This document shows positions 1-56,930 of a DNA stretch of 64,000 bases, one piece after another. The notes beneath the pieces were generated by a model. That model was not told the DNA's origin. It did no database searches and worked only from the letters and a program-made list of their open reading frames with translations. The first letter of the stretch is position 1. Every line of letters starts with the position of its first letter. The stretch comes from Convolutriloba macropyga (taxonomy: Eukaryota): NCBI RefSeq assembly GCF_964194025.1, contig NC_134476.1, positions 37,386,001 through 37,450,000 on the forward strand. Reading direction: 5' to 3'. A program made the position numbers and the translations under genes.

Positions 1-1
1 A

Positions 2-706
2 AATTATTACAGGAATATCCGAGAAAACTTCAATAATTTGTCGTACAACACTTTTTTCTGAAAGTTGATCGAGACCGTATCCGGGTTTTGGTAAACTTAT
101 CGAACGTATGTGGTACTTCAAAATGACGAATCGTAGTGTGTGAAGGGCAACTGAGAAGTAGTAATAAGTAGATTTATCATAATAGTTTTCTTTCCTGACC
201 AGGCTGAAGATATATCGATTTAAAGTCGTATCATAAAATGATAAAACTGAAACTATTGGCGGTTTTCGCGCAAATGCTTGACTCTGCGGTATTTCTGTGT
301 AATAGTAGGCAATTTGCCGGGCAAAGCCTTTACGCATCTTCATATCACTTGATACACAATGTACAAAAGAGCTTCTGGAGTTAAGTATATCACCTCTATG
401 ATAGAAGAATTTGGCTCTTGTTTTTCGAATTTCAATTACAATTAGGTTTGAAGTAGTTTGTTTGCTCTTTGACTGGATTCGGGTTACTTGTCTGTTCTCA
501 TCAGTTGAGCCTCGTTTATATCTCTCAATGCTAGATCGTACTTGGTCTAGTTTCGTTTCTCTAGTTGGAGTTTGATCCCTTCTTGATCTGCGCGAAGATT
601 CTGTAATTATTTGGTGTTTTTGTTCTTTTGTTAAGATTGGTGGCTGTGTAGGAGATTCGGGCAATCGTGGCGTTTGTGAACGTGAACCGTAGCGTGCTAC
701 AGGTTT
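2..706 (-). CDS. Pol C-terminal tail with TARG1/OARD1 (Poa1p-like) macrodomain; open frame runs off the window
   Basis: Hand translation: ~95 aa R/S/T/P-rich spacer, then FYHRGDILNSRSSFVHCVSSDMKMRKGFA...RYIFSLVRKENYYDKSTY...ISLPKPGYGLDQLSEKSVVRQIIEVFSDIPVII (418 to 2). This is collinear with human TARG1 motifs as recalled: YVKGDLF/LAHCISEDCRMGAGIA/RYIYYLITK/SMPRIGCGLDRL/IEEVF. In-frame TGA at 707-709 upstream. Confidence 0.88.
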
Positions 707-2729
707 TCAGGATTCAAATTTTCTGACTCCGAGCCAATTAATCTTTTGACCTGTTTAGTTGTTCTTGGCATCGTAATCTTCTTTGAAAACTTTTTGATTT
801 TCTCTGCTTGTGGAGATATTCCCTCATTTGTAATTGTGCTGCCCAGAAATTTGATTGACTGTGAGGCAATTTCACATTTTTCTGGTGACAATTTCAGTCC
901 AGATCTTCGGATGCAGTCAAAAATTTTCCTTAGACTAGTAAGTAGCTGACTAAATTCTGTTACTGCACTCCCAATATCGTCCATGAATTGTGTGCATATA
1001 CAGGCTGCTAGACAAGGGTCTAGATAATGGCGAATGAATGAACTAAAACCAGTGACTGATTTGCTAAGTCCTTGAGCTAGACATTTGTACGCGTAAGTTC
1101 TTGATGAGAAATTGAAAGCTAAAAGTTGTACTGAGGTGTCGTCCGCCATCTGTACGCAATGATAAGCTTGTGAGCAGTCAAGTTTTGTGAACAACGTTTT
1201 TCCTGCAAAATGACTAGTTGCATCAGCCATGTTTGAGATTGGGAAATGAGTGCTGTGGTAGTCATTTTTGAGTAGGTGGTTGACTCTTCTCAGGTCAATT
1301 AAAATTCGCAGTTTGCCTGATTCTTTTCTATGTGCAAATAATGGACTACTGTATTTAGACTGTGACAAAGTTGTTATAAGTCCATAGTAGTGCATTAATG
1401 CTAATTCAATATGTAGTTCGTCACGTAGATGAATTGGGGTTGGTGGTCCTTGTACATATACGGGTAGGTCATGCTCTGGGGTTAACTTTATTTTTAGTTC
1501 CGTATTGTATCCAACATCAAATCGGTGTTTGGCAAAAATGTCACAATATTCAATTAATAAATGCTCGCATTCTTCGATTTGCTTCTGGTTTAATAACGAA
1601 TTTTCCCAGTTAAATTTACTGAGAGAAAATTTTTGGTCTTCCTCATTACTTCGTGGATCGACCTTCTCCAACTTTTGGAATTTTAATATTTGGTCATAAA
1701 TTTCTTGTTGTAAGAGCGGCAAATTACTTGGATCCTCGCAAGTTTCTGGTGTTGGAAACCATAGTTTACTATATTCGGGTGGAGGTCTCCTAGTTTGGCC
1801 TGGTTTGTGTTGAGTGAAATCTTGGATAAGTTGGTTCAATTCCGCAAAATAATCATCTTTGTTTCTTGATTTTGCTAACGTTATCAGTTGTGGGTCAATT
1901 TGTATCAATTGGTCGGCTTGCTCGGTTGAGAGGATTGAGAATCTGCCCACCACTGTTCGACTATTAATTGTAATAGGGTGCTCAGTTACGTTCAGAGCAG
2001 AAACGTACAGTGTATTGTTGTTTCCTACAGTACTTAGCGAAGAAGTTAGTGCGATTTCCGTTTCTTTTTCAAGAATTTCATTGGGAGTGATTACTCCACT
2101 TTTGTTCTCAAACTGATCGGTTTTGTCTGATAGATAGCATTCCAGGAAAATTTGCTCGTTGGGCTGTATTGTGTGCTTCTTGTTTGTGTAAATGGGAATT
2201 TTCTTATGTCTTACTGATCGTCGTTTTTCGTTCACAGGCTTGATTTCATTAATTTGAACTGTCAGATCGGGCAATTGAATAAAGGCTTGTTTTGGGCTAA
2301 TTAAAATATCATGCTTGACAAAGAAGGGGTTGCCAAGGATGACCGAGTTTGTTGAGGAAAGGACGAGGAAGTCTTCAGCAAACTCTCTGTGAGCGAGTTT
2401 AAATTTAATTTCAGCTTGTTTCTCTATTCAGACTAGTTGTCCTCCAGCCATTTTAACTGAAGTGCAATCTGGTTGCTTCAATATGACTGCATTCTTGTCA
2501 GTTTCGGTAATTTCTAGGAGTAATCTGTTGCTTATGACATTTGCACAAGCGCCGGTGTCAATTAGTGCTCGACGGCTTATTCCGTTATTAAATTTAATTT
2601 TGACATAGGGAAGAAGGGATGATCTCATATTTGAGTTTATATTGTAAAGATTAAATAGTTTACTAGACTGCTCTGTAGATTTGGAAGACTGTTTGCGACT
2701 TTTGGGCGTTAAGGGTGGCTTTATTAGTT
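697..2729 (-). pseudogene. pol: pol of element A: protease, dUTPase-like domain, RT; truncated after RT
   Basis: One frame from the frameshift site: LIDTGA and ILGNPF protease motifs with a premature TGA at 2428-2430; RT motifs YSSPLF, IDLRRVN, KLDCSQAY, LAQG (1069-1080), FMDD (976-987), KC..IKFLG. Homology ends at KQVKRLIG (~733); RNase H and integrase are absent. Confidence 0.92.
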
Positions 2730-3905
2730 TTTTGATTGGCGATTAAATGGAAATGAGGTTCCTCTATTATTAGTTCTACCTCTCTGAGAACATTGACTTG
2801 ATCGATGATTTGGATAACCACATGTATAACAGAAAGTACCGCTAGATCTAGGCACAGGCATATATGGGCTGGTGGGCATGCGAAATTGTGACTGAGATAT
2901 GAAATTTCGAGGATAAAACACTTGAGCGTTAGTGTTTGGGAATCGGGGTCTCGGATTTCTATTAAGGAAGCTTCGACCTCTAGGATTGTTTCCTCTGTAA
3001 GAGTTCTGATACAGTTGGCTTGCATAGTTATTTCTGGGCGTGTAGGGCACTGCGGGAAATTGCCCCTGCCTACTAAATGATTGCTGGGGAGAGTGAGTTA
3101 CGTCTCTCTGTGTTGTTTCTATCTGTGCCGCCGTGATGCGGTCGTCAATTGTTTGAAGCTTTTTGTCTAGTGAATCTTGCGTCTGGTTCAATTTAGAGAG
3201 CGCATTGATCAAGTTTTCGGACATGGTGTTATTAATTTCATTGAACCCATCTTCCGGATAGTCATCTTTTCTGCACATGTCTCTAATTGTCATCTGTTGT
3301 CGAGCAGTGGTGCAGAGATCGGTAACAAGCGTGGCTGGTGGTTGTTCCATCAATTTTGATCGCAGCCATCCCGGCATGGCTGCGATGAAGATTAGTTTTA
3401 CTTGTTCGTTCTTATTGTCCTCCGCCGCTTGCAATCTAGCAGCTCGTGCGGCTGTTTCTCCATCGAAGCGTGCGTGCTCTGCTCTATCCCCTGCTCCTCC
3501 ATCTCCTGGAAGCGCTAATGCTGCAACTGCTGGCAGATTTGGCGTTGGATACGCACGCTGAGCCTTTGTTTGTAGGTTCACTAGGAAATTTTCGGGGCTG
3601 TCTGTTTTTGGGTCAAATCGCAGTTGTTCTAATTTAAGAACGTGTACTTCTTGCAAATCTTGATTCGCGAAGTGGTCCCTGAGTGCTGTGAGACTTAATT
3701 CAAGATCATTTCTGGTTGCTTCGGGCAACGTTTGAAAATATCTTAACGCGGCGTCTCGGAGTTGGAGTTGCAAAAAATTTGATTGTTGGTTGGCAGGAAT
3801 TGCTGCGACACCAATAAAACCTCGGAAAAGGTGCTCAAATTGGCGGAAACTTTGATTTTTGGCTCCGCTATAGGGCTCTACTGTTATTTGGGCGTTTGCG
3901 GCCAT
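2724..3905 (-). CDS. gag: Gag of element A (393 aa, intact)
   Basis: ATG start, retrotransposon capsid-like N-terminal half, R/N/P-rich linker, zinc knuckle CYTCGYPNHRSSQC (CX2CX4HX4C). Confidence 0.92.
   Translation of the reverse strand: MAANAQITVEPYSGAKNQSFRQFEHLFRGFIGVAAIPANQQSNFLQLQLRDAALRYFQTLPEATRNDLELSLTALRDHFANQDLQEVHVLKLEQLRFDPKTDSPENFLVNLQTKAQRAYPTPNLPAVAALALPGDGGAGDRAEHARFDGETAARAARLQAAEDNKNEQVKLIFIAAMPGWLRSKLMEQPPATLVTDLCTTARQQMTIRDMCRKDDYPEDGFNEINNTMSENLINALSKLNQTQDSLDKKLQTIDDRITAAQIETTQRDVTHSPQQSFSRQGQFPAVPYTPRNNYASQLYQNSYRGNNPRGRSFLNRNPRPRFPNTNAQVFYPRNFISQSQFRMPTSPYMPVPRSSGTFCYTCGYPNHRSSQCSQRGRTNNRGTSFPFNRQSKN
2727..2733 (-). promoter_or_regulatory. -1 ribosomal frameshift slippery heptamer A-AAA-AAC (gag/pol)
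   Basis: Minus strand reads TCA AAA AAC TAA at the gag stop; the -1 frame is open without stops into the protease ORF. Confidence 0.85.
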
Positions 3906-3978
3906 CTTAGTTTCTTATAATTTTAAAACTGCACTGGATGAAATTAAAGGTGATGATCTGGATGGGCTGGGAATGCAA

Positions 3979-4323
3979 TTATTCAGAAATTACGATGAGG
4001 GGAGATTCAAAATCATCTAAATCAATGTCATAGCCATGGGTCATGAGATGTCTAACTTTAGAAAATTCGCGTGCTTTTTGTCGCAAGGTCTTGGGGATAA
4101 ATATTAAGGCGCGTTTGTCAATAGAATTTTGAGTTAAAAGCAACATTTGTTTTGGTTTGTCAGATACAAAGGCACTAACAACTGTTGAGATAATAAGGTT
4201 GTTAGTTTGGGGGCTAATGAATTGTATATAGTTACAGTCTACATATTCCACAAAATGATTTGAGTTGCGGCAGTTATTAATAACAGGGAGTATTTGGGTA
4301 TTATATAAATCGCGGGAAGGCAT
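3979..4323 (-). CDS. Leader accessory ORF3 of element A (114 aa, unknown function)
   Basis: ATG-started intact ORF (MPSRDLY...) between PBS and gag, same strand, ending 73 nt before the gag ATG. Confidence 0.55.
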   Translation of the reverse strand: MPSRDLYNTQILPVINNCRNSNHFVEYVDCNYIQFISPQTNNLIISTVVSAFVSDKPKQMLLLTQNSIDKRALIFIPKTLRQKAREFSKVRHLMTHGYDIDLDDFESPLIVISE

Positions 4324-4465
4324 TTTAATTTAGCACCAAAATTTATATGTTCTAACTCACAGTTTCCAAATTGACTCGATTTGGTTGCCAATAAGGGGTT
4401 TCACTCTCTCATTCTGTGTGTATGTGTCTCAGTGTGACGTCACTGTCATTTGGCGTCACCTTCTT

Positions 4466-4633
4466 TTAGACTCCAATCTCTGTTGCATTGACAATTGATA
4501 ATTGGAACGAAAAGCTAATGGCGCTGTTTGTCATGAAGAGGTAAATGAAGAGTGCTGTGATCAGATAATAAGCAATGATGGAGAAGATAAAGAATGCTGC
4601 AGTAAAATATAAGCAAAATTTGTTGAGAGACAT
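4466..4633 (-). CDS. Leader accessory ORF2 of element A (55 aa, predicted transmembrane micro-protein)
   Basis: Hand translation MSLNKFCLYFTAAFFIFSIIAYYLITALFIYLFMTNSAISFSFQLSIVNATEIGV*; about 29 consecutive uncharged, mostly hydrophobic residues. Too short for the ORF track. Confidence 0.5.
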   Translation of the reverse strand: MSLNKFCLYFTAAFFIFSIIAYYLITALFIYLFMTNSAISFSFQLSIVNATEIGV

Positions 4634-4663
4634 CGGTAATAGGACAACTATAAAGTACTAAGT

Positions 4664-4996
4664 TTAATTTGAATCTCCGCTTTCGCATATTAATTGAGTT
4701 TTCAGGCTTTCTAAGTGGAGATGCATTTCCCTTTTAATGTGCCTAATTGCTGCTTTGAATTCATACTGATTGTCGAATGATACTATTGCAATGAGCCTGT
4801 CTCTATAGTCTTCTGTAAGTCCAACAATAAAAATAATGAAAATTTTATCTTCAAGAAAGATAGAGTACGTTTCTGCGGAGGTATTTTCGATGTTGGGGCT
4901 TCCGTAAGAAAAGAGTGTTAAATCAAATTTGTGCAGTTGTCTAACTTCATCTGAATCGTGCAATTAACTCAATAATGTTTTGAATAGCAATGGCAT
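4664..4996 (-). pseudogene. Leader accessory ORF1 of element A (~110 aa, one premature stop)
   Basis: ATG at 4996 is in frame with the 99-aa track ORF: MPLLFKTLLS*LHDSDEV...; single TAA at 4964-4966. Confidence 0.5.
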
Positions 4997-5067
4997 TAGG
5001 AAAAAGAAACATTTAAAAGATAAACAATTTTGTTTTTTTTGAAGGAACTAATTGGAAAAGCTGTCTA

Positions 5068-5081
5068 CACTCCTGTCACCA
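5068..5081 (-). promoter_or_regulatory. Primer binding site, tRNA-Leu-like
   Basis: TGGTGACAGGAGTG directly after the LTR end; resembles the complement of the eukaryotic tRNA-Leu 3' end (...CACTCCTGACACCA). Confidence 0.75.
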
Positions 5082-5387
5082 TGTAATATACCTTTGTCCG
5101 GCTATATTATTGCGTTGAATTTGTTGAAGTAATGTTTCTCGCTAGTTTAATTAACATCTTAATAACATAACTTTTGTCTCTTAAATTATTCTTTTCACGT
5201 GATTGTTCAGGGCCTGAGCGGGTTTTCAATTTTACTTCGGAGCAGGGCCGACAGCTATTAGTTTTGTCACTAGAGAAAAGGGGGTTCCAATCTAAGACTG
5301 AATTTTTTGTCTGCTGATTTATAACTTGACAATCTTGGTTGTGTCGCTTAAATTATTACTTTTTAAGACCTGAGGGTCGTATTTACA
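5082..5387 (-). repeat. 5' LTR of element A (~306 bp)
   Basis: Bounded by TGTAA...TTACA inverted termini and abutting the PBS; the partner LTR is outside the window, so the outer boundary is inferred. Confidence 0.75.
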
Positions 5388-7854
5388 TTTGAGTAATCAC
5401 TTATACAAATACATCAAGATTAACTCAAGATAAATAGAACTTCTGGCGCGTGCTGACACGTGCCAGGCAAATAAGATGAACATAGTAAAGTGTACATTGT
5501 AAATATAAATACCGGTTAGCACTATCACAAATTCCTCTGTTATGGGTAAATCAAATAACAAAAGATAATTAAATGGTTTTTAGAACAAATATACTTGAGA
5601 AAGTTTACAGGATATTAAATAAAGTAAATATACATTTTCTCATCTTTAGGAACAAAACGTACTTTAGGACGTTACACAGCATAATCAACAAGAGACGCTA
5701 TAGATTGTTTCAGTTGACCCAAATTCTGATTATATTTTCATCTAAGCAAAATAATTATAATTTTCATAGATTTGCAAAACGATGATAACCTTTCAAAGAA
5801 TTAATAAAAATCTTTTATTGCTAGGAATTCCAAAATACATTACCCCCAAATTAAATGACCTATGATGCGCATTATTACTAAGTAAAAAAACGATGGCGGA
5901 ATGTCTAAAAACTACAGCTTTAAATTTTGGTCATAGCAAAAGTGGAAACTCAAGCAAAATGGCTCGCATGATTCTGTACATGGCAAAGAAAGTTCCCATA
6001 CTTTTGGCATCATTCAGAGTATTATGTCACTACATTGGGTGGGCTACAGCAATAACACTTGCATTCGTAACATAATTTTGCTTTCAGTAGGCCACCGATC
6101 AGATTTTTGCTTCAGTAAGTTCCCAAGACAGGGCGCCAAATCAAAAAGATGGATATAATCAAAGATATATCAAAGATATCAAAGATCAAAAGATATCGAA
6201 TTACGTTCATTTTTGATTGAAACTGATATCTACGCCCAATCCTTATCCCAACGTCTACAGCGAGGTGCAGTGAATTTTTACTGAAAAATAATGTCAATGC
6301 TCTACAGTATCGCGTGAATGAACTTCCAAACATTAAAAAGAATCAAGGTTAAGACGATCATGAAAAACACTTGATGGTTGAAGGATGCAAGGAAATGAAA
6401 TTGGAGTCCTAACAAGCCTGCATTATCTTCACAAAGCGAAAGCAACCACAGTTGAGTCATCTTGTAAGAAATAAACAAAATCTCTCAAAACTACTCTTTC
6501 AGAATGACATGAAATTTTTATTCCAAGTCAGAAACCAGTCGGTTCCAAAAAGTGGTCAGACAAATCGTTTCAAAAATACTGATACACTGACGTTCAGAGA
6601 TGACAATAGAATACTCAGCCAAAAACAAAATTAGGCTCCATAGATTTTTTTTGTTGGGATATCACAAGCCCAGCTTTTTGGTCGACAACATTCAAAGAGA
6701 ATGTAAACATTCCACAAAGGGATCTTATCTTTCAAGTAAGTAAAGCACCCCAAGTTACAGAGCATGTGTAGTTAAAAACGAACCGTTTTGTAAAAAAAAT
6801 GACAACCCCTAAAACTGGGGGTACAAAAGTAGAGGATTCAAATAAGCGATGCGTAACTTCAACAACAGGAAAAAAACTCATGCAAAATTTGGAATTCGCT
6901 CATAACAACGCGAAGCTTTATCAGCGCATCAATTGACCTGAAAGTATATCGGCCGCAATAATACATTGGAGCAATGCCTCTGGTATAATTTGTATATATT
7001 ATATAATTAAGCTGAAAAGCGTCAGAATTGGCCAACCAGTCAAAATTGTTGCCAAAAAGAATAAACAAAAAGAACAAGAAAAAGAACAAACAATTTTCAA
7101 AAACTTCAGCTTCAATCCGCTGGTCACCCAAGAAAAAAATCAATAAAGCGAATCTGACCTTTGGAAGCTTCACAAAAACAGCCTTTCAAAGATTGACAAA
7201 ATGACTGCCGCATTGTCAACCTCAAAAACATTGCAAAAAATTAACTGTCACCCCATAAAAAATCTCATTAAAGAAATTTGCCATTTACACCAGGAAGCTT
7301 CGCTAAAACAGCATTGAAATGATTAAAATATGATATAATCTATGCAGCAACATTAAACATCAACAGTGATTTCTGGCATCATGTAGGATACTTTGCCTGC
7401 ATTATCACAATAATATGCAAAAAAACTTAAGCCGCCAATTTTTTTCCACCTTTTAAAATAGTTAGTGAAACTAAAAAATTCGAAAATTCTCCCCACTTCA
7501 TCAGAAATAGTAACTTTTGAAATTGCAATCTGCTCTGAAACTTTATGGTCATTGAAGACACAATTAGTTACATAAATTAAGATAAAAACTCTAAGAACGA
7601 TGCAAGAAGGGTACTCAAGAAGCTTAGATAAAACTTTCAATAAGCTTAGCGAATCGTTTAAACGTGATTGCACAATAAATAAAGAAGGCCAATCTGAAAG
7701 AGTCGCAACGTCATCGAAGTATGGTCTCTTAATATTAGTGAAGTTAAAAAGATAGATAACCAAGTTGACGAAATTTATTTAATGCAAGCTGAGAAAAATA
7801 ACAAGAAGGCACAGTAATGTGAGTTTGCACCTAAGGTATCAAATAAACTTTAAA

Positions 7855-8710
7855 TAGGTTAAAGTTCATTCATATCTCCATATAAAGATATTGAGACCTG
7901 TCATTCAGAATATGTCGTACGTCTACAAAAACAAGTGACAAAGACGAAAAACAAAAAATCAAATAAATTTAACGAGAAAACGGTATCGAAGCTGTTTAAG
8001 CAATAATCTACTCCATTAAGAAAAGATATAATCAATTGCTCCTTTTTTGAACAAAAATAATGTGATATGTGAACTCTGATTGTGGAGACTAGGTAAAAAG
8101 TAGACAAGAGGAACAAAAAGGGTGAAATTTAAAAATACCTTTCTTATTTTTTGAAAACAATATCAATGTCAGAAAACAGCACCTATCAACTGAATCGTAA
8201 AATTGGTTCAACTATCTCTCCAAAGAAAGCCATGGAGATATGTCATTACTCAGAATATATACGTCTACAAAAGAAACAACAAATTTTTGCGCAAAACTGG
8301 TGTCGAAGCCGTAAAAAAAGTAAGCAATGCAGCAAAAATAGATATGTTCAATTATGACTTTCTTAAACACCAATATTCTGATATCCGACCTAAAGTTAAT
8401 GAGACTAGGTAAGAAGTAGAGAACAAAGAACAGCAAAATGTACAGTTAAAAACAAGTCAAAATTTTTTATTACATTTGATTTCAAAGACAAGAGAAATTT
8501 CAACTGAAATCAGTAAAAAGGTTCCTTTTCTCATCAATAGGAAGCCACTAAGACCTGCTAATATTTAGAATTTTCATATGACTACAAAATGACAAATAAA
8601 GACAGCAATAAAACTCCATTAAATTGGGTCGACGCCGTCAAAACCAAAAAAAAATTAGTATGTTCAATTGTGCCTTCTTTCTGAACGCCAATAATTTGGT
8701 ACCTGACTTG
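7855..8710. repeat. Diverged tandem repeat, ~3 copies of ~320-340 bp
   Basis: Recurrent motifs gagacctgtcattcagaatat / acgtctacaaaa / tcgaagc / tcaattg / gagactaggtaa (8085, 8401). Confidence 0.55.
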
Positions 8711-9691
8711 TCAATAATGTGATTATACGACAAAAACAAAAACCTCAAAGATGCGTAAATGTACAATAATCAAAAATTTCTGAAAACTCGAAGTAGCAAA
8801 GCGGACAAAACCATTAACTAAAACGTAAAACCGCTATAAATATTAAAATTTAATCCAAAAAAAGACGATGCGACCTTTCTTTGCTGACCTTAAGCTACCA
8901 GTAGACAAAAATGTCAAAGCTCGATTATTTTTTTTAAATGAAGACGACCATAAGCTTTCGACTAAAACTAGACAGGTTTCCTTGAAATAAGAAGGGAATT
9001 TGATCTGTCAATAGTAAGCCTCGATTTGAATTGTTTGTTCTGTTCTATAATTAACATGAAAAAGGCAAAAATGCTAATATAATTTGAAAAAGACAGCGAC
9101 TGACTACAAACCGAATTATTTTTTGACTGTAAAAAAACCAACGATTAGACCAAAATTAGCCTTGCTATTGCTGTCTATCCATCAGGAACATATGCTTGCT
9201 CTGAATACAATGGATATGAATAATTTGACGAAAAATGTCAATACAGTAAAAAACAAATGATATATTTTGGATAATTATTGAGTTAAATTAGCAAAACTGC
9301 GGCTAATTTTAATTCAAGAACACCCTCAAAGGACGCGCAAGTAAAACTGGACCTCTTTGAAGTTAACAAAAAAATTGATCAAACAGTTCAACAACACTCT
9401 TCTATCATTAGAGGTAAAACCAACAACACTATCGTTAACAATTTTAACATTGTTTAGCAAAATCGGCAAAAAAATTACGTAAAAGTACGAAAAAAGTGAA
9501 CAAAAACTTCGAGAAAGCAGGCAAAATTCAAATTTTTTAAAATAATACATTCTACGCTTGAGGGGCGTTCTAATGATATCACTCACAACCCTCTGTGATG
9601 AATATATCAATCGGGCAAAAAATGTACTGTACAAAAACATCCATTTGAGTATGTCGGTAGGAACAAAGGAGTCGGAACAATAAAATGAATA

Positions 9692-10167
9692 AAACATAGC
9701 CGGCAGATTGCCGGAATAGCTGCGAAATAGACTTGCGTGCCGTAAAATACAGATGGAAAAAGATACAGAAGTGAGTTGATAATAGTTATCGCCGCCGCCT
9801 ATAAAACTTACAAGTTTATTTCAAAGGAGGTTGTTTTTGGGTGCAAAAAAAAGTTTCCCTGTCGCGTCTCGAACCGGCGATCTCCGGATTAACAGCCAGT
9901 TGCCTTAACCACTCGGCTGTCGGACCATACAATCTGTTTTCTTACAATCAACTTTGCTTTACGAACAGATTCTGTTTCTGAATAACCGCAATTTAGGTCA
10001 CGCAGAAAGCGTGAAATCAAGCGCGAAAAAGCCATTTAAGCAGTGACGAGACAGAATGTTCTAGAACAAATGTAAAACGAAAATAAAGCGTCAGACGACG
10101 AAACAAAAAAAAACCAAGAGCACCGCAATATAGCTACGCTCAGCTTACAGCTTCGCAGCTATAAAAA
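9692..10167 (-). mobile_element. Non-autonomous Helentron-type (HINE/DINE-1-like) element
   Basis: Minus strand: T-run, 5' subTIR ATAGCTGCGAA with a nearby partial inverted copy (10129-10138), 3' subTIR TTCGCAGCTAT (9716-9726), GC hairpin CCGGCA-ATC-TGCCGG (9700-9714), then CTATGTTTT. Confidence 0.65.
9855..9926 (-). pseudogene. tRNA-Asn(GTT)-like sequence inside the HINE
   Basis: D-arm/A box AGCCGAGTGGTTAAGGC, anticodon loop CTGTTAA, T-loop/B box GGTTCGAGAC, followed by a T8 run. Acceptor and T stems pair poorly. Confidence 0.7.
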
Positions 10168-11304
10168 CAACACTCAGATCTCTGAACGGATATATACAAA
10201 CATTTACAGGCGTACTTAAATGTTTCCTACCAATTAAAAAAGAAACTCTCGTTTAACTTGTTTTTCTTATCTTTACATATCCATCCCACTGAGGTAAACA
10301 ACATCATAATCAAAGACGACGGATTTAAACCACCAAAAATTAATTTCAGAAAATCTAGGGGAATGCAATCAGGGTAGTCATGAACGTAGTAACGAAATCA
10401 GGAAAAAAAAAGGACCGGCTGCTAAATGTTTCCTACGTTTCGCTCCTATTCTAAGCCACATCAGAGGTTCAATCAAATTTCTTGTTACTGTAGTGATAAC
10501 AAAATCGAACTGTCTTTAAAGTCACTTCACAAAAAGTAAATTGCCGAGACATCAAATAAACACAATAACTCGACAAAATGCACTGAATCTGAAATTTTCA
10601 GGAATCTTGAAGGGAACATGCTAGCCATTTAGAACAAAAAATATTTGCCGGAGATTTGCCTGTTGTCAGCAAAGGTTAAAACAAATAAATCAGTGAAATT
10701 TTGAAGTGAAGGTTAAGCTGAGCTACGTTTGTAGTTTTTTTCTGTTTTTTCCAAAAAAAAAATTACGACTGAAGCAATTCAGAGAGCAGAAAAATTACCA
10801 AAATTGAGCGGAATGAATAAAAATTTGGCTGAAGTCTAGATTTAATTTCTAGATTAAATTTATTAAAAAAGAATATTGCTAAAAACCATTGAAGCGCTTC
10901 AACTGTAGATGCAGACTGCTTCCATTTATATCACATGCGGGATGCCCAATAAAAAGGTCGAAAATTGTTACGACTATTTAGATGCTGTAACCAAGGGCAA
11001 CAGTAATGCTGTGAACAAGTGACGCCAGGAGCAAAAAACAGTGACGAGATCTTGTCACTTGTATGTGCTAGTTCAAAAACAGTTATAGTGGACAAATAAA
11101 AAGAATATTTCCAATTTTGAAGCAAATCTCAACTAGTTTACAACTAGAATCTTAAAACATGGTCACTTAAAAGAGTGACATAATCGAGTAAATTTCCTCG
11201 CTAAAAAGAACTATTGTCAACGCAATGGCAGACTTATAATAAACACGATATATTGGATATGGCATTAAATATCGTTGGCATTAGCGGTAAGTCCTGTCAT
11301 TTAC

Positions 11305-11726
11305 CCCGATTATTCTGACTGTCATCCAAAGTTAATTGGAAACAACTGCACTGTTCGCAATCTTTGCTAAACGACTGCGCACGTTTATATTCACTACTCT
11401 GGTCAAAAGAGGATGGACTGGTCGGGCTGTTAAATATGTTCAAACTGCTTTTCTTTCTCTTCTTTTCCTTTTTGGGAGCTACAACATTACTATTTTTGAA
11501 ATTCTGCTGCTGATGAAGATGGCAAGTTCCAGTGTGTCGTAGGTGATTCTGACAAATATTTGACTCCTCCTCAAAGTGTGATTGGGGAAATGGCTCACTT
11601 AAACGCGGCAGGGTGGTGGGAGGGTGTCTCGGTTGTTGCAGTTGAGGTGATTGCTGATTCTGGGGCTGCTGCTGTTGAGCAAATAGCCATGCAAATGGCA
11701 GCGAGTGGGATCTGTGTCTATTCGAT
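11305..11726 (-). CDS. Candidate internal exon of an unidentified host gene (Q/P/S-rich with basic cluster)
   Basis: TTTCAG acceptor and G|GTAAAT donor bracket an open frame of ~140 codons (QQQQPQNQQSPQLQQP..., PKKEKKRKK). GC content is higher than the flanks. Confidence 0.45.
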
Positions 11727-13128
11727 CTGAAATTCATTCATTCAATATCAAAAAATATTTCTGCAATCAGAACTCGCATAACCGGCGATGTTGTGACAAA
11801 GAAAAGCCCACTTAGGTTCTAGTGGCCACCTTTGGTGATCGACAAAGTTCAAGTTGTTATCGCAGCAGAACATTTGAACGATTACAAAAAAAATTGTGCC
11901 GACAAAAATTCGGAATAATCAATGCCCGGACCCAATACCTCTTTTGATGACATTCCGCAAAAATTATAGCCGGATACAGACCGTGCGGCTGCAAATGTGT
12001 AATGAAATCTTGACGTGTCCTAACCAACCATTCGAAAATTTTCCGAAGAAAATTTAGTTAACAGATGCCGATTATGTTCTCAATGAAAAGTATTTTGATC
12101 ATTGCCAAAACCTCTGGGAATCACTAAAGGAAATTTTTAGCAATTTATCTCAAAAATTTTCTCAAAAAAAAGATTGTGAAACAAGTTTCAAAAATTGCAG
12201 CTCTTAATTTTTTTTTACATGGAACACGGTAGTAACAAATATTTGAACAGTGAGCAAAACAAATTTCATAGTTACGTAGACACGATAAAAAAAATGATTG
12301 AAAAGACAACGAAGAAAATTGTGAGTTCAAGTTAAAATTTCAGCTCCTGCATTTTCTCCAGTGGCAAAAATGAGAATCAATTTTTGTCCAGTAAGTATAT
12401 TAGATCCCATACTTATATAGACACAATCAATCAATCAGAAAAACTGCTTAATTTTATTTATCAATGACAATAATTTTTTTGTAATTCGTTAAAAACAATA
12501 TTGTAAAAAGTGACCACAAAATTATTCCCAGCCCACTTTTAGTGGGGGATGGGGGAGGAACACTATGCTTAAATGGTTTTTTAGTTGTCAATTTTGGCCG
12601 ATCGGTATATTGTTAGTGGCATCACAAATCACTTTTCACACTGAATTTTTTCACATTTAACGGCGATTTTCGGGCAGTTCTTAATTTTTGATTAATTAAA
12701 CTAAATATTACCGTATTGTAGCGACATGACTTGAGAATCCTGGTATTTTTGGTCTCGTGGTTTTTAGAATAAACAGATTTGTATTTGAATATAGATTTTT
12801 CGATTTCACATAAAAGCGCAATTTTAACGTGCGGCCATTTGAGTTTTGCTTGCGCTTTTTCTCGCGGCTCTCCCGCAAATGATACAAAAACGTTGTTCAA
12901 GCTTTAATGGTGCATAGATTTTATTGTCTACATTAGTCTGTGGGATCCCACTGAAGTTCTAACGAGGCCTAAATGAAATTACACAAATTTTTCAGTTAAC
13001 ATATGGAATTGAATAGAAAATGATTATTTTTGTTAAATAAATTCTTTCTGAATGAAAGAGTTGTTAATCTCTCTGTAGTTCGTATCATTTTCCGAGTACT
13101 GATAACCTCATTGATTGCAATAGTCATA

Positions 13129-13513
13129 TTGGTGATTTGTAAATAACCGATGATTTTTGCTGACTTGTCTCCCGGCCTCGAAAAAAAACAAGTCTGATCA
13201 GTCTTCTGATGCAGCATTATTCAAATCAGACAATTTATTTATTGAAGTTTTTGATTTTCTACAGCATGCCTTAAATTTGCTGTTAATAATTGTATTGGTG
13301 TTAGTGTTGTCCAGAAATTGACATCACAAACACCAATGCAATATTAACAGAAAATTTAAGGCATGATTTAGAACAATCAAAAACTATTCAAATACAAAAT
13401 AGCAAAAAAGGGATCACTGTCTAATCTGAATAATGCTGCATCAGAGCTGACTGGTTTTCATTGACGCAAAGAGACAAGTCAGCAAAAAACATCGATTATT
13501 TGCAAATCACCAA
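13129..13513. mobile_element. Palindromic foldback/MITE-like element (~385 bp)
   Basis: Imperfect inverted arms over the whole length (ttggtgatttgtaaata..gctgacttgtctc vs gagacaagtcagc..tatttgcaaatcaccaa), centre ~13315. Confidence 0.8.
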
Positions 13514-13947
13514 AAATTGGCTTTCAATTTAAACGAAAATCAGAAAACCAATAGAAACCTGGGTAGACTTTCACTTTGAACAAAACTCAGAAAACCAATA
13601 AAAACCTGGGTAGACTTCTGAATAGATGCTTTCGGTTTCTGAAATAATTAAGTGTGTAACAATTGAAACATCATTGTTTTTTCAATTTCGACCCCGTAAA
13701 TTTTCAGAATGTGATCAAATTATCTCAAAATTAGGTTTTATTTCGGTTAAGCGTTCCGTTAAAACTTTTGAAACTTGTCACAGTGTCCTAAAACAAACAC
13801 ATAATTTAAATTTTTGCCCATTTGGGATTTGTTTTACAGATTATGCATAATTTTTTTTCGCAAAAACTGGATTTCTCGTTTTTCAGCATTTTTCCTTTTT
13901 TTGCATATGTGGGGGCTTATATGACTTGATAAAGAATGCATTAGATC

Positions 13948-14246
13948 TGTGGTACCCCGTGGTATCCACTAACAACCTAACCTATCATTATTGCAGTAAA
14001 TTCATATTCAGTGAAATGCCGTACATTTGTAGCCTTCTGTTCTATGCGCCTCTCAATCGTACCACGATTGATTACCACAGTGACTGGTAGTTGTAACCTT
14101 CAGCTCAACTATCACGTTGGCAGCGAATTGCCTAATCGCAGTCTGCCTTAACGTTAGTAATCAACAGTTGTCATTGAACATCTTTTGAATCACCTTATTC
14201 AGCATACCAGGCTTATCGAATAGCGCAACACTTTCCGAGCACAACA
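13948..14246 (+). repeat. 5' LTR of element B
   Basis: TGTGG...CAACA; 7 substitutions versus the 3' LTR, counted by eye. Confidence 0.97.
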
Positions 14247-15330
14247 TGGCGCAGTCAGACAAAATAGGACGCACGGCGCTAGGACTTGAACCCTTCTGGA
14301 ACAAACCTAGCAGTAACCCACCAATATCATGGGAGAAATGGAGGAGTCAACTCAAAATGGCCCTCGTCGCTAAGACAAACATCGAACTAGATGAACTACT
14401 CGAAGGAGACCGACGACAGTCATTTACCCCCCCCCCCCGAACCGGTAGAGGAACAACCCGCACAGAATCCAACACAAGCAATGGAAAGAGAACGAATAAC
14501 GAGGTACCACCAGGCAATAGCCAAATGGAAAAACGAATGTAATCAAATCGATGGAATAGGGGTCCAATGCGGCGACAAACCATGGGACATGGCAGATAGA
14601 AAAGCCAAACCTCTGATCTACCTTAGCCTCGGAAGTGAAGGACGAAAGATGCACGCAAGAAAGTTATCCCACACAAACGTGGAATCAAAATCAACAATGG
14701 AACTATGGGACGAATTAGAGCAAACGTTCATCCGCCCAAGAAATGTAACGTTCGATAGATACCTTCTGTTGACACGCAAACAACACCGAGGGGAAACAAT
14801 GGAACAATTCACTGTCAACTTGCCGATTTAGAAGATGAACTCCTAAGGGATATATTCAGCGCAAGCATGATAGATCAAGAGATACAAAAAGAACTGCTAA
14901 AAACAACCCTCACCCCAGAAAAGGCCCTCGAACTAGCAGTGAGTATCGAATTAGGCATCAGAAGCCAATTAGCCATACAGGCAGGGCAACCATTGGATGC
15001 TTCGGCAACACCATTTAATGGACGAGAGGAACCAGTCATGGAAATCTCAAGCTCACGCTTCCGGGGATCACCACCAACAACACCGCGAGGTATGGGTAGA
15101 GGAAACGGCAGAGGCATGAACAATAACAACATAGCATCCACTCACAACTGCAGGAACTGCGGACAACCCTGGCAAGGCGGACAACCCTGGATAGCAACCA
15201 CCGAGCAAGGTGCCAAGCAATCGGCCAAACGTGCCGCCGATGCAACAAACAGAACCACTATGCGAAGGTTTGCAGATCCAACCTTAATAGACCCCAATCC
15301 GGAAGATCTGTGAACGAAATCGACAACCAG
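14246..15330 (+). pseudogene. gag: gag of element B (frameshifted)
   Basis: MAQSDKIG...WEKW..., FDRYLLLTRKQ..GETMEQF, knuckles CRNC..H..C and CRRCNKQNHYAKVC spread over several frames. Confidence 0.9.
14247..14256 (+). promoter_or_regulatory. Primer binding site, tRNA-Ser-like
   Basis: TGGCGCAGTC immediately after the LTR; complement of a ...GACTGCGCCA tRNA-Ser-type 3' end. Confidence 0.75.
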
Positions 15331-15333
15331 TGA

Positions 15334-18300
15334 TTGGACCAACAAACACAGGGCATAAACATGATCTCACTAAACCCGGACACCCACTCGTCATACAAAG
15401 ACTCAGCGGACGAATACTCAGTTAACATGATGGAAACACCGGACGACCTCACAACACCATCAAAACTACAAATCCAATATGGTCAGAGTAAATTCTGGGT
15501 AATGGTTGACTCAGGAAGTTCCACTAGCATCGCCACGGAACAAATGGCGAAAGATATAGAGGCAAGAGACATCAACACGTGGTGGAGCAGAACAACAAAT
15601 CCACTGAAACTAAAGAGCTACACCGACACCCCTATAAAAACCCTGGGAACCCTCTACTGCGACATTGAGTGCAACGGCTGGAAGGCAGGACGCGTGGACA
15701 TCATAGTGGTCCCGGACAAACACCGAGCGATTGTGGGAAGGGACCTGTTCGAACCCCTAGGAATACAACTAAAACAACACGACTCCCCAAAGTCCTCAGG
15801 TAAGAACGTCAACTCAATAGACACCCCTCAAACCCCCTCAATCAAGGAAGAAGTAGCAATTAAATACAATAACCTAACAACCAGAATAGGACGATCCATA
15901 CACCATAAGGTAAAATCACAATTTAAGTCAAACTACACCCCCGTCCATCAAAAAGGAAGACGCGTACCACTACACCTCGAAACACAAGTAGAAGAACTAA
16001 AAAATTTACAGAAAAACAGACATATAACCAAACTAGAAAAATGTAGCGACGAATTTTTCATATCACCTATCATAATAACAGTGAAGAAAGAAATCAATAA
16101 AACGAGCAATGGAGTCGAAAACAATCAACAAATCAATTCACAAAAACAAATATCAGATGCACAACATCGACTGCCTAATGGACAGCATCGCACAAACCAT
16201 CACTCAATCGTCCGACGAAGGAGAAGTCCTATTCTCAACAATAGACCTACGCTACGCATACAGCCAATTACCACTCGATGACGATACAGCAAAAAAAATG
16301 CAATTTCAATATCATAGGCGGTCAAGCCAAAGGAACATATCGATTCAACACTGGATATTACGGACTAACAGATATGCCGGCAGAATTCCAAAAAGCCATA
16401 GACAAAATTTTATACAACCTATCGAATACATTGTTTTCTGGACGATATCATTATTGTTACAGGAGGTGGTTTACAAAACCATAAAGAAAAATTGTTCAAA
16501 TGCCTAGACAGACTAAATGAAGAAAACCTGGCAGTAAACGTTAATAAATGCCACTTCGCAAAAATAAGATAACTTGGCTAGGCTATGAAAAAGACCAAAA
16601 AGGTATTAAACCAATCGTCTCTAAGACACAGGCAATACTTAATCTGAAGCTACCCTCATCCCATAAACAACTCAAATCATTCTTAGGAAGCGTCCACCAC
16701 CTAACGAAATTTATACCAAATCTAGCACCCCTATGTCGCGAATTAAGAAACTTACTACAAAAAGATACGAAATACGTATGGACAAATCACCACCAAACAA
16801 AGTTCGAAAACATAAATAAATGCATACGCAACCTGACAGAAAACACACATTATGACACAAAAAGAAAGACCGGAGTTAAAACAGACGCATCAAGATCGGG
16901 CCTAGGGGCAGTCCTCGAACAAGAAACTTGCAACGGGAGGAAGACAATATCCTACGCCCCAAGATGATTAAATAAAGCAGAAAAAAATACAGTATAAACG
17001 AATTAGAATTATTAGGAGTTGTATGGGCGTTAGCACACTTTAAACACTATTTATTAGGTTACCATTTCACAGTACAAATCGACCAGAGGGCTCTTCTATC
17101 AATGCTTAAAGAACGATCAAGTAAAATCCACCAAAGCCGCCTAACCAGGTGATACGATAGATTAATTCGATCCAATTTTACTATAGAACACATAGCCGGA
17201 ACAAAGATGGGACTAGCAGATTACATGTCCCGAAATCCATCCGAACCTGCAAAACCCCCGAGCACTTATGACGAAAATTTTATAATAGCTCAAATAGACG
17301 TCATAAAAAAACACTAGAAATCATACGTAAAAGAGGCAGACCAAGGAAACTAAACAATAACAAAACACAGCACAACACATTAACGACGCACAACGATTCC
17401 AATGACACAAACAAATACAATGGAATCGTCCAACGATTCCAACCATTCCCTATATTGCCAAACCAAACGACAGAGATGCAGGCCCAGAAAAGCAAACGTG
17501 GAATCGTCGACCGATTCCACACTAACAAAAAACAATACCGACAAACGCGGTATGACTACAAACAACTCACCAAAGAATAGAAAACACAGCCTACGCAGCA
17601 GTCACAAGACATTCCAAATACAACAAAAACAACGGATAATGACGTCACTAACAATACGCAAGACAAACAGCAAACGAATACACACGCGCATTTGCCAATT
17701 AACACAGCTATACTCCAACAGCATAATTCAAACAAACAACACAATTTAACAAATCAAATGGAGCACACAACAAATAACCCAAATAGCGCCACCGCGAAAT
17801 CACCAGTGCAGAAAACATCCTTCTCAATGAGCAACTACCTAAGCCCTACCCCAAAAGCATCGCCTCCTAAATCAGACGACCAACTCTCAAAACAACTGGA
17901 GAGCGTGTTCAATCAACAACTAATTGCAGCAATGATCAATAGAGATACGGTGCAACGGGAGATCAGAGACTGCATAACCAATGAGGACCAAGCTCGATGC
18001 AAAAGCCTGAGCAAGCAGATATACGCAAAATGGGGAAACCTAAGCGTCAACAACGGCTGCATACTGGTGGACAACAAATTAGCAATACCCAACATCCTGA
18101 AGGAATCTGTAATGAACGTCCTCCATGCAACGCATCCAGGAGCGTGGGGCATGACTGAACTAGGGCAGAGATTATGGTGGCCATTCATCAACCGAGATTT
18201 AATCAATAAATCCAAAACGTGTCAACCCTGTACCGAATTTGGTAAGAATCTTAAAAGCTTAATACGAAAGTCCGATTGGACACAAACAACAAATACACAA

Positions 18301-19612
18301 TAGACAAAAGTCCGATAAACAAATACATAACCCAACACGGAGTACCTAGAAACATTAGACTAGATCAAGCCAGATGCTTAAAAGGTAATAAAATACAACA
18401 ACTATGTAAACGATACAACAATGAATTATTATATGCCCCAGCTAACGACCATCGCCCAATAGGACTAGTAGAACGTCTAGTACAAACCGTCAAACGACGA
18501 TTGGGCTGCATAAAACTCGACCCCAATCAGAAACCGTTCAATATTAAGAACGCCCTACAAAACATATCATTTGAACTACGCACATGCAGAAAGAAAAATT
18601 CAAAACTCTCCCTTATCGAAGCCCACTATGGAAGAAAAGCGAACACCGCACTAACAAACATAACATCTAAACCAAATATCAAAAACTTAAATTGGTCAAA
18701 CACTTTAAATACTATTTAGATGACAACATCATAGGAGAAGAGGAACTCATCAGTCAGGAAAAATGGTATGACGAGGATCTAGATAGTGATGCCGAAGTAA
18801 AAGCAACGAAACAACGGAAGCTACAGGAGGCCAAAGATGACGAAGGTGAAGTACCCCGAATCATCAAACTCCCAGCCGCCAACTTCGAAGAACCATTAGC
18901 CAGAAACAGCCCTCGACTCCAATTAGCCCGCAAAACTCTTGCCGCCTCGCGAAACAAGAAGCAACTGCAAGGACTCTATGAGGCCATTCCGGTGGGGGCA
19001 GCACTCGTCAAAACAGCTGACAGCACAGTAACGATCAAAGTACCAGGCCAGCAGGACACCTCAATAAATCTGATGTCGCAAAATTCGGCACGCCAGAGCA
19101 ACGCCACATTCGTCATTAATTTCGCCGCCAGAAAGACCGTGCGCAATCATCATGCAATGCTCATACAGAGCATGGAATCACACGCACAAGACATCAAAAA
19201 CAAGATCGTCGGCCAACGAGCCATCCGCAAAAGAGCACCCCAAGCGTCGGATTTAGACAAAAAGGCAAAAGCCAACCTCGCAAAGGTCAACCGCATCAGA
19301 ATCCCACCTAAAAGAACCTATCAGCCATCACCCAGAAAAGGATCTCCCAAAAAGAGAAAGCTCTCGACGGCATCATCACAAGAGTCAGCAGACGAACAGG
19401 GCGACGAACTCCACGAGTCCGATACTAGCCGAGATTACAAAGCCGCACCCAAACAACCCGAAAGTACATTACTAGTGGAAACAACTGGAGCATCCACCCG
19501 ACGCAGAGCACGAGACAAAAAGAAGCCGAAACGGTACGGTGATCTCACAGAAATGTCATCCTCGGATGAATCGTCGGACAATGACAAGCCCCAAAACATC
19601 GAAGAGGAATAA
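15334..19612 (+). pseudogene. pol: pol of element B (PR, RT, RNase H, integrase, long C-terminal tail)
   Basis: VDSGS protease; ISPII, IDLRYAYSQL, FLDD (16435-16446); TDASRSGLGAVL, ELELLGVVWA; HATHPG..CQPC; HGVPRNIRLDQ, GLVER. Multiple frameshifts; the first catalytic Asp region of the integrase core is missing near 18290. Confidence 0.93.
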
Positions 19613-20139
19613 GCATCGCTTCCTATTTTCCACCCAGAACAACCCTTGCTGAAACCACGTCACTGCCGCCCCACAGCGTAATACCTTTGACCTTATCCAG
19701 CCATATCCACCCGGCCGAAAACATTGGAATCGCTCCAAGACATCAGCGAAGACCGAACCCACGGAGATATGCTTGCGATCTTCAAACAGGACCAACCTGA
19801 ACGCTCCCTTCAACCCCACAAATTATAGTCAACAAAGTTAAAAACTCAAAAACTCTGATCATAGTAAAACTCCTAGCTCAAACTTATTATGTTGCCCTGT
19901 CATATTACTTGAAAGTATCTGTAACCATTAATTGTAGTTACAATAGCAACCACCAAACCTCTAGTGCTCACATTTGCAACCCACCACCAAGACATAACCA
20001 TAGTTGTTACTAGTTCTCATCGCCCTAACGCGCTCAGTACTTTACACTGTTAACAACCTTTCAATTGTTACTAAAAGTTCATCAAATTGTATTCATACTC
20101 AATCATCACTAACCTTTATGTTATTTTGAAATTTTCTCT

Positions 20140-20150
20140 AGAGGGGGAAA
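20140..20150 (+). promoter_or_regulatory. Polypurine tract of element B
   Basis: AGAGGGGGAAA immediately before the 3' LTR. Confidence 0.9.
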
Positions 20151-20449
20151 TGTGGTACCCCGTTGTATCCACTAACCACCTAACCTATCATTAGTGCAGT
20201 AAATTCATATTCAGTGAAATGCCGTACATTTGTAGCCTTCTGTTCTATGCACCTCTCAATCGTACCACGATTGATTACCACAGTGACTGGTAGTTGTAAC
20301 CTTGAGCTCAACTATCACGTTGGCAGCGAATTGCCTAATCGCAGTCTGCCTTAACGTTAGTAATCAACAGTTGTCATTGAACATCTTTTGAATCACCTTA
20401 TTCAGCATACTAGGCTTATCGAATAGCGCAACACTTTCCGAGCACAGCA
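20151..20449 (+). repeat. 3' LTR of element B
   Basis: Direct repeat of 13948-14246, followed by TSD AGATC. Confidence 0.97.
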
Positions 20450-43414: not shown

Positions 43415-44216
43415 CCCGGGCCGAGGAATTTGGCCAAAATTATGTAAGATCAGCGGCAACTAGCGTTGACAAGTCGGAAAATTCACCGCAATTTTCTTAC
43501 ATAATTTTGCGTTGAATGCGTTGAATTTAAAGACAAAAATTCAACGCATTCAACGCAAAATTATGTAAGAACTGGCGGTGAATTTTCCGACTTGTCAACG
43601 CTAGTTGCCGCTGATCTTACATATTTAGCGTTGAATTTAGCGTAGATCTTACATATTTAGCGTTGATATTAGCGTAGATCTTACATATTTTTGCGTTGAA
43701 TTTAGCGTTGATCTTACAAAAAATTTATGTAAGATCTACGCTAAATTCAACGCTAAATATGTAAGATCTACGCTAAAATTAAACGCTAAATATGTAAGAT
43801 CTACGCCAAATTTCAACGCAAAATATGTAAGATTGGCGTTGAATGCGTTGAATTTATGTAAGGTCTACGCTAAATTCAACGCTAAATATGTAAGATCTAC
43901 GCTAAAATTCAACGCTAAATATGTAAGATCTACGCCAAATTTCAACGCAAAATATGTAAGATTGGCGTTGAATGCGTTGAATTTATGTAAGGTCTACGCT
44001 AAATTCAACGCTAAATATGTAAGATCTACGCTAAAATTCAACGCTAAATATGTAAGATCTACGCCAAAATTCAACGCAAAATTATGTAAGATTGGCGTTG
44101 AATGCGTTGAATTTATGTACGATCTACGCTCAAGCGTAGATCTTACATAAATTCAACGCATTCAACGCCAATCTTACATAATTTTGCGTTTTTTAGCGTT
44201 GACACCTCGGCCCGGG
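43415..44216. mobile_element. Foldback element with CCCGGGCCGAGG TIRs and modular ~32-bp internal repeats
   Basis: Perfect 12-bp TIRs; unit AAATTCAACGCTAAATATGTAAGATCTACGCT in both orientations; 129-bp higher-order repeat x3; internal palindromes centred ~43533, ~43720 and ~44130. Confidence 0.88.
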
Positions 44217-56185: not shown

Positions 56186-56385
56186 NNNNNNNNNNNNNNN
56201 NNNNNNNNNNNNNNNNNNNNNNNNNNNNNNNNNNNNNNNNNNNNNNNNNNNNNNNNNNNNNNNNNNNNNNNNNNNNNNNNNNNNNNNNNNNNNNNNNNNN
56301 NNNNNNNNNNNNNNNNNNNNNNNNNNNNNNNNNNNNNNNNNNNNNNNNNNNNNNNNNNNNNNNNNNNNNNNNNNNNNNNNNNNNN
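56186..56385. other. Assembly gap (200 N)
   Basis: Run of exactly 200 N. Confidence 1.
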
Positions 56386-56620: not shown

Positions 56621-56930
56621 AACCCTAAAAATCTTTGTTTTTATTAAATATCCATAAACAAATTTAGCTGGAAAAGTTTCTGCTTTCTGTAAGCCTTTTG
56701 CTTCCCAGCAATTTAGCAGAACATGGACTGATAACATGGTCCGAGAGACTTTTTGCAGGATTCTCACGTAAATAAACCCTAAAAATCTTTGTTTTTATTA
56801 AATATCCATAAACAAATTTAGCTGGGAAAGTTTCCGCTTTCTGTAAGCCTTTTGCTTCCCAGCAATTTAGCAGAACATGGACTGATAACATGGTCCGAGA
56901 GACTTTTTGCAGGATTCTCACGTAAATAAA
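56621..56930 (+). repeat. Tandem duplication 2 x 154 bp
   Basis: aaccctaaaaatctttg at 56621 and 56775. Confidence 0.92.

Follow-up and report, generated by a model that had tools for sequence, protein, structure and literature searches.

The DNA analysed here is a 64,000-nt stretch of the Convolutriloba macropyga genome, read on the forward strand (assembly GCF_964194025.1, NC_134476.1 37,386,001-37,450,000) and referred to as the window. Its left end is occupied by a retroelement of the Ty3/Gypsy type with long terminal repeats (LTRs), which lies on the minus strand and encodes a macrodomain at the window edge. The original prediction had drawn attention to an open minus-strand frame, 418..2, that is absent from the list of open reading frames (ORFs), and had read it as a TARG1/OARD1-type macrodomain at the end of Pol. 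This stretch is indeed free of stops, and its translation returns the 139-residue peptide that had been quoted. The open frame to which it belongs is longer (706..2, 235 codons, upstream stop at 709-707) and is missing from the ORF list because it runs past the left window edge, and ORFs that cross a window end were not listed. Leftward extension, proposed earlier as a check, locates the stop 10 codons beyond the edge and the 3' LTR further on, so that the macrodomain forms the C-terminus of its own ORF. We have very little doubt about the identity and the architecture of the system, that is, a macrodomain of the TARG1/OARD1-DarG class at the C-terminus of a retroelement Pol.

An exact look-up of the gag ORF led to L001, which is a contig of 429 kb in ENA assembly ERZ25071359. 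In reverse complement it matches window positions 1-13,905 without a difference and adds 7.3 kb to the left of the window edge (window x = L001 13,906 - x). The element is bounded by two LTRs of 595 bp each with TG...CA ends, which are 99.2% identical (5 mismatches in 598 aligned bases), and is flanked by a 5-bp target-site duplication (Table 1). As the original prediction had supposed, the macro segment lies inside this LTR element and not beside it. From left to right on its own strand the element consists of a 1.2-kb leader, gag, protease, reverse transcriptase (RT), the macro ORF, a 3.7-kb spacer and an env-like ORF. In the env-like ORF, which precedes the 3' LTR (742 aa, L001 17627-19855), a hydrophobic stretch rich in Ala and Gly comes after a basic cleavage motif, and there is a C-terminal hydrophobic segment as well. 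The ORF is a candidate for the baculovirus F-related, class-I-like fusion glycoprotein that marks errantivirus-like Gypsy elements. Pfam gave no match on this ORF or on its counterpart in the sibling copy L009; among its 136 homologues (P0276-P0395 among the relatives, some in clusters of up to 128 members) two have a precomputed match to Baculo_F (PF12259). One env homologue is located in NCBI assembly GCA_013332895.1. The lineage is retrovirus-like because an env-like gene is present. The family of the window element, with clusters of 87 (RT), 35 (gag) and 41 (env) members, is a young, abundant, env-bearing LTR retroelement of the Ty3/Gypsy type. The Ty3/Gypsy order of Pol domains, with a Gypsy-type RNase H and an H2C2 integrase, is present in the relatives P0443, P0153 and P0411; the assignment is based on domain order and LTR features and is made to Ty3/Gypsy as a whole.

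The identity of the domain was evaluated by sequence and by predicted structure. A phmmer search against all PDB sequences retrieved the human OARD1/TARG1 chains 4j5r, 4j5q, 2eee, 2l8r and 2lgr (E 1.2e-9 to 1.7e-9) in an alignment that spans the whole domain (query 4-134 against chain 8-136), followed by DarG macrodomains (E 1.7e-3 and 2e-2), and only TARG1 and DarG chains reached E <= 10. The collinearity with TARG1/OARD1 and the relation to DarG that had been proposed are thereby confirmed. In a HMMER scan of 1.84 billion representative proteins there were 874 matches at E <= 1e-3, nearly all of them to small macrodomain or macrodomain-containing proteins, and, judged by sequence, the similarity to macrodomains is far above chance. 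Pfam Macro stayed below its threshold on the window fragment. The classification rests on the PDB sequence matches, the fold search and the intact siblings.

Both catalytic positions fall exactly on the codons that had been named for them. The Lys of the LVRK motif (codon 193-191, AAA) is equivalent to Lys84 of TARG1 and Lys80 of DarG, and the Asp of GLDQ (codon 70-68, GAT) to Asp125 of TARG1. The Lys is conserved in 154 of 154 aligned macrodomains (28/28 linked to retroelements and 126/126 others). In all seven full-length Pols that were compared, the Asp, the Thr preceding the Lys and the Gly-x-Gly-Leu-Asp loop are conserved as well.

An AlphaFold2 model, built from a 64-row alignment of natural and mostly intact homologues, has a mean predicted local distance difference test score (pLDDT) of 92.1 and a predicted template modelling score (pTM) of 0.87. 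Foldseek against PDB returned 245 matches at E <= 1e-3, the named top matches being macrodomains or macrodomain-derived scaffolds without exception. Ranks 1-11 are taken by TARG1 (template modelling score, TM, 0.80-0.88) and DarG (TM 0.82-0.86), and the MacroD-type domains of vertebrate viruses rank lower (TM 0.67-0.74, 11-14% identity). The fold check suggested earlier thus gives a macro fold, with three alpha/beta/alpha layers around a central mixed beta-sheet in about 150 residues, and with TARG1 and DarG on top. From these alignments and the predicted fold, the segment classifies as a macrodomain of the TARG1/OARD1-DarG class, closer to TARG1 and DarG than to the MacroD, PARG or macroH2A classes.

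The architecture is seen best in intact relatives. The window ORF with protease and RT belongs to an 87-member cluster at 90% identity that includes P0443 (1788 aa) and P0438 (1469 aa) from the same assembly, each of which ends in a complete macrodomain 72-75% identical to that of the window. For P0443 the Pfam order is RVT_1, RT_RNaseH, Integrase_H2C2, rve and Macro (25.9 bits, cut-off 22). In a single frame, an intact Pol thus runs from protease through RT, RNase H and integrase into a proline-rich linker of approximately 300 residues, a conserved basic segment and the macrodomain, with the stop just after it. The P0443 locus (L009) contains gag, Pol and an 806-residue env between LTR regions that are 99.4% identical across 470 alignable bp. 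More distant families with the same layout were found in a second assembly, ERZ25074608 (P0153, 1338 aa, and the 25-member P0155 cluster with Pols up to 1732 aa); LTR identity in them is 98.7-100%, and the macrodomains share only 31-37% identity with that of the window. A third sample contributed P0005, in which integrase C-terminus, linker and macrodomain are the only parts represented. No chromodomain is among the Pfam matches of the intact Pol P0443 at E <= 1, and the macrodomain occupies the position. The original prediction of a Pol C-terminal module fused to integrase, at the site of a chromodomain, therefore holds for the intact members, which carry the domain in frame at the Pol end, but not for the window copy, in which RNase H and integrase are deleted, the frame is shifted and a stop intervenes. 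A word-indexed search with the macro part of a long Pol retrieved one relative only and is uninformative on prevalence in annotated genomes.

Individual relatives differ in detail. In L006, whose LTRs are 100% identical, the Pol frame changes within an A run at the codons of the catalytic Lys (~15177-15190) and the rest of the macrodomain continues in another frame; P0409 ends differently at the same A run. The cause is a true polymorphism or else a sequencing error in the homopolymer. In L004, a tandem duplication of 3.5 kb (12543-19606, 99.7%) doubles integrase C-terminus, macrodomain and downstream sequence, and in L002 the leader-gag segment is present in three tandem copies (1-5952, 96.6-98.3% identical). 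ORFs for an SLC28-type nucleoside transporter, a BTB protein and a BACK-Kelch protein neighbour elements in ERZ25074608 and say no more of its host than that it is a eukaryote.

The window copy has lost 2708 nt relative to the intact sibling L009, corresponding approximately to Pol residues 634-1535, which comprise the end of RT, RNase H, the entire integrase and most of the proline-rich linker. Homology to L009 and L002 is continuous from the LTR to window position 732 (92-93% at the nucleotide level) and resumes at 730. The RT is cut at the thumb and followed by 11 out-of-register codons up to the stop at 699-697, and the frame is shifted between RT and macro as a result of the 2.7-kb loss. 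Exactly at the junction, identity to L002 and L009 drops from approximately 92% to approximately 80%, and it returns to 92% near the start of env (positions concerned, L001 13176-14403 and 17196). Across the same region, L002 and L009 agree with each other at 93% without a break. At synonymous sites the macro part has diverged about twice as far (0.52) as the rest of the element. The simplest reading of these identity profiles is recombination between two subfamilies: the deletion coincides with a switch to a more divergent subfamily and would have arisen by template switching between co-packaged RNAs during reverse transcription.

Table 1 Features of the macrodomain-encoding element, in window coordinates and in order along the element strand.
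Feature	Position	Strand	Details
Target-site duplication	5677..5681	-	5 bp, TGCTG on the element strand; repeated past the 3' LTR at L001 20530-20534
5' LTR	5082..5676	-	595 bp, TG...CA; partner at L001 19935-20529, outside the window
Putative primer-binding site	5063..5081	-	TGG directly after the 5' LTR, read from sequence
gag	2724..3905	-	393 aa, CCHC zinc knuckle; in a 35-member cluster at 90% identity
Protease, N-terminal part	2428..2628	-	weak aspartyl-protease matches; in-frame stop 2430-2428 interrupts Pol
Protease, C-terminal part, and RT ORF	697..2274	-	Pfam RVT_1 E 5.5e-24; 95% identical to P0443 residues 1-632
Deletion junction	730..732	-	RT-side homology to 732, tail-side from 730, one unmatched base between
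In-frame stop in the tail/macro frame	707..709	-	eight codons into the tail frame; siblings read through
Conserved basic Ser/Thr-rich segment	428..706	-	93 codons, upstream of the macrodomain; homologous to approximately residues 1545-1637 of P0443
TARG1/DarG-class macrodomain	2..427	-	142 of 153 codons; remaining 10 codons and stop at L001 13906-13940

Selection was estimated from pairwise Nei-Gojobori comparisons of natural copies with binomial p-values, in which broken copies were compared over aligned pieces only. Between the window copy and L002, the ratio of nonsynonymous to synonymous divergence (dN/dS) of the macro part is 0.29 (dN 0.149, dS 0.518, p 1.4e-5), compared with 0.19 for gag, 0.10 for protease-RT and 0.16 for env. 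The basic segment upstream of the domain has a dN/dS of 0.29 against a sibling copy. Pairs among L006, L007 and L008 give 0.20-0.27 for the macrodomain (p <= 7e-5), and in L007 versus L008 the proline-rich linker is at about 1 and RT at 0.04-0.06. By these estimates the macrodomain is under purifying selection, looser than that on RT, and the linker is unconstrained. The true constraint on the macrodomain is probably stronger, given that a pairwise comparison of genomic copies picks up neutral changes accrued since insertion besides the effect of selection in the active lineage. The dN/dS comparison that had been proposed as a check comes out at 0.20-0.29 for the macrodomain, with p <= 7e-5 throughout.

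Human TARG1/OARD1 (C6orf130; PDB 4J5Q, 4J5R and 4J5S) is the best match in both sequence and structure, with 26-27% identity over a colinear fold of approximately 145 residues, and the motifs H-C-x-S-x-D, L-x-T-K, K-P-T and G-C-G-L-D are common to it and the intact family members. In contrast to TARG1, which is a free-standing cellular protein, the domain is here the last module of a retroelement polyprotein of 1,500-1,800 residues and follows a basic segment, and the window copy carries private changes in two of the shared motifs. The macrodomain of the DarG antitoxin (PDB 5M31, 5M3E and 5M3I) is of the same class (TM 0.82-0.86) and has the catalytic Lys in common, but it is the prokaryotic toxin-antitoxin partner of DarT, and no DarT-like gene was seen in the element. 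The activity characteristic of the TARG1/OARD1-DarG class is hydrolysis of mono-ADP-ribose linked to Glu/Asp or to thymidine, and DarG reverses the thymidine-linked ADP-ribosylation of single-stranded DNA. A substrate of this thymidine-ADP-ribose type would be relevant to reverse-transcription intermediates.

Macrodomains are also found in other genetic parasites. RNA viruses (coronavirus Mac1, alphavirus nsP3, rubella, hepatitis E and invertebrate RNA viruses) likewise carry a macrodomain within the replicase polyprotein, although the well-studied macrodomains of vertebrate viruses are of the MacroD type and those viruses are without a DNA stage. The nearest predicted viral structures lie within polyproteins of invertebrate RNA viruses, namely VP8 of Kadipiro virus and macrodomains of arthropod virga-, negev- and flavi-like viruses (TM 0.81-0.89, 24-29% identity). 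The original prediction had anticipated some precedent in retroelements, and PMC4977317 (citing Basta et al. 2009) reports that epsilon-like endogenous retroviruses of ray-finned fish, which are LTR-bearing, reverse-transcribing elements too, carry ORFs with a macro domain. As described there, these are occasional extra ORFs in vertebrate Retroviridae and not a C-terminal domain fused to the Pol of a Ty3/Gypsy element. They are the sole retroelement precedent that we found, and a literature keyword search for Gypsy/Ty3 Pol-macro fusions returned none, with the reservation that domain-architecture databases may list such proteins. Chromoviruses share the placement of an accessory module at the Pol end, past the integrase C-terminal domain, but their module has a different fold and ligand, and they are without env.

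A quick maximum-likelihood tree built from 148 domains places the integrase-linked macrodomains in a single group of 19 rows (Shimodaira-Hasegawa-like approximate likelihood-ratio test, SH-aLRT, 88), to which nine short unlabelled ORFs, probably pieces of elements like these, also belong. TARG1-like macrodomains occur in other retroelement positions as well, after RNase H (P0020 and P0130) and before the retroviral protease (P0074). These positions may or may not go back to separate captures: the quick tree separates them, but the approximately unbiased (AU) test does not reject a single clade (p 0.88), for which the constrained tree is even better. The TARG1-like fusions among P0020, P0130, P0074, P0050 and P0102 comprise RT-RNaseH-Macro, RNaseH-Macro, Macro-retroviral protease, an XPG-type nuclease with Macro, and TBP with Macro.

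For intact elements, we propose that the macrodomain acts as an ADP-ribosyl hydrolase that uses the Lys/Asp pair as TARG1 does. It would be made within Gag-Pol and carried by Pol into the particle and the pre-integration complex, where it would remove mono-ADP-ribose set by host ADP-ribosyltransferases on element proteins or on RNA/cDNA intermediates. This would be a counter-defence parallel to that of RNA-virus macrodomains, whose known role is to counter host PARP-dependent ADP-ribosylation (PMC7232374). Taking identity, architecture and hydrolase counter-defence as one statement, we lean slightly towards it being correct; the counter-defence mechanism by itself is tentative, with a chance that falls just short of even. 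Several observations weigh against this proposal. The window copy is itself defective, with two premature stops, and cannot make the Pol-macro fusion. It also departs at 3 of 15 positions that are near-invariant across the 154 macrodomains, namely at the one that precedes the catalytic Lys, at the Pro in K-P-T and at the central position of Gly-x-Gly. All three departures are private to it among the intact family, which agrees with sequence decay of this copy, and the reading of LVRK and PGYG as decay that accompanied the original prediction thus describes real changes. The AlphaFold2 model represents the family fold and is no proof that the window copy folds, given that the alignment consists mostly of intact homologues. 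Furthermore, conservation of Lys and Asp is to some degree expected of a tight ADP-ribose binder too, and a chromatin-tethering module would be expected in just this place, behind integrase on a long flexible linker.

Such a module would read ADP-ribosylated chromatin or PARP-marked lesions and steer the intasome to them, as an analogue of the chromodomain for which catalysis is dispensable. The extreme C-terminal site after the integrase C-terminal domain, the near-neutral, proline-rich linker of approximately 300 residues and the lack of a chromodomain in the Pfam matches of P0443 all fit it. However, reader-only macrodomains usually lose catalytic residues, and here no sequence lacks the Lys, and all seven full-length Pols retain the Asp, the preceding Thr and the loop; in addition, intasome tethering is less natural for the TARG1-like macrodomains that sit after RNase H or before protease. 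We consider a purely reading function unlikely. A narrower form of the hydrolase proposal, in which the Pol-tethered enzyme strips thymidine-linked ADP-ribose from minus-strand cDNA, or acts on ADP-ribosylated RNA ends, is somewhat less probable still. If true, it would mean that the host restricts reverse-transcribing elements through nucleic-acid ADP-ribosylation, a defence that is known from bacterial DarT and that, to our knowledge, has not been described against eukaryotic retroelements. The domain could also deacetylate O-acetyl-ADP-ribose or strip sirtuin-type mono-ADP-ribose, and so relieve transcriptional repression of the element. The TARG1/OARD1 structures were deposited as O-acetyl-ADP-ribose deacetylase 1, and SIRT6 is reported to silence L1 retrotransposons by mono-ADP-ribosylating KAP1 (reviewed in PMC4695847). 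A Pol-fused domain is nevertheless late and scarce compared with Gag and is expected in particles, not at the promoter, and a role in metabolism or silencing is improbable.

The two remaining alternatives concern whether the domain matters to the element at all. A host OARD1-like gene may have been captured once and carried since without benefit. The broken or altered macro regions of the window copy, P0001, P0003, P0004 and L002 speak for this, as do two copies in ERZ25074608 in which the frame changes at a homopolymer within the macrodomain. Any transposable element family accumulates broken copies, though, and faulty sequencing may account for the change at the homopolymer, whereas the macro dN/dS of 0.20-0.29 against about 1 in the linker and a domain kept in frame across lineages as divergent as those in ERZ25074608 speak against it; a neutral passenger is very improbable. 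The last alternative, a host exon or an unrelated insertion beside a truncated retroelement, is suggested by the window itself, in which the macro frame follows a truncated RT in another frame with neither RNase H nor integrase between them. The enclosing 99.2% identical LTRs with their target duplication, the colinearity of L002 and L009 across the macro segment and the intact Pols that run from integrase to macrodomain in one ORF refute it, and we give it practically no weight.

Nothing shows more clearly that ADP-ribosylation is an antiviral weapon than the macrodomains of RNA viruses. A class of macrodomain that also reverses DNA ADP-ribosylation, fused to the polymerase of an abundant, recently active retroelement family and under selection, argues that elements which replicate by reverse transcription are drawn into this conflict too. 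Few accessory domains are known at the C-terminus of Gypsy-type integrases, and a putatively enzymatic module now joins them; the natural intact copies provide a concrete protein for assay, and the finding points to a host activity that is worth seeking.

The spacer between pol and env, whose DNA is not alignable between copies, contains an antisense ORF in L001 (15253-16356, minus strand) and L009 (14709-15851), of 368 and 381 aa, respectively; it is broken in L002 (~12290-13349). Between copies that agree at 91-93% in the DNA of gag, RT and env, the identity of this ORF is only 26-42%. It has no Pfam or PDB match, and its AlphaFold2 model (pLDDT 29) is unusable. The copies share H-I-E ... 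G-x-K ... G-D-x-I-x-Q-P ... H-A-V, in which a resemblance to a cupin/JmjC metal site is a personal reading only.

The rest of the window is rich in transposons; no tRNA or Rfam match was found in it, and no host gene was recognised within the 64 kb. A second, unrelated LTR element lies at 13948-20449 on the plus strand, with 299-bp LTRs that are 98% identical and further partial repeat copies at 20359 and 20567; stops break up its ORFs for a gag-like protein, RNase H and integrase, and it has no macrodomain. Retroelement debris with RT (RVT_1) and integrase-like ORFs fills 59505-63935 on the minus strand (59.5-64 kb), and ORFs whose family was not recognised are present at 40167-41357 on the plus strand (40-41 kb). 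A run of 200 N at 56186-56385 is an assembly gap or masked sequence. Tandem repeats were found at 51287-52586 (3 copies at 500-bp spacing, 97-98%), 43722-44108 (3 x 129 bp), 56621-56928 (2 x 154 bp) and 59018-59243 (2 x 113 bp), and repeat pairs scattered over 33-39.5 kb and 49-58 kb hint at two segmental duplications that have since diverged.

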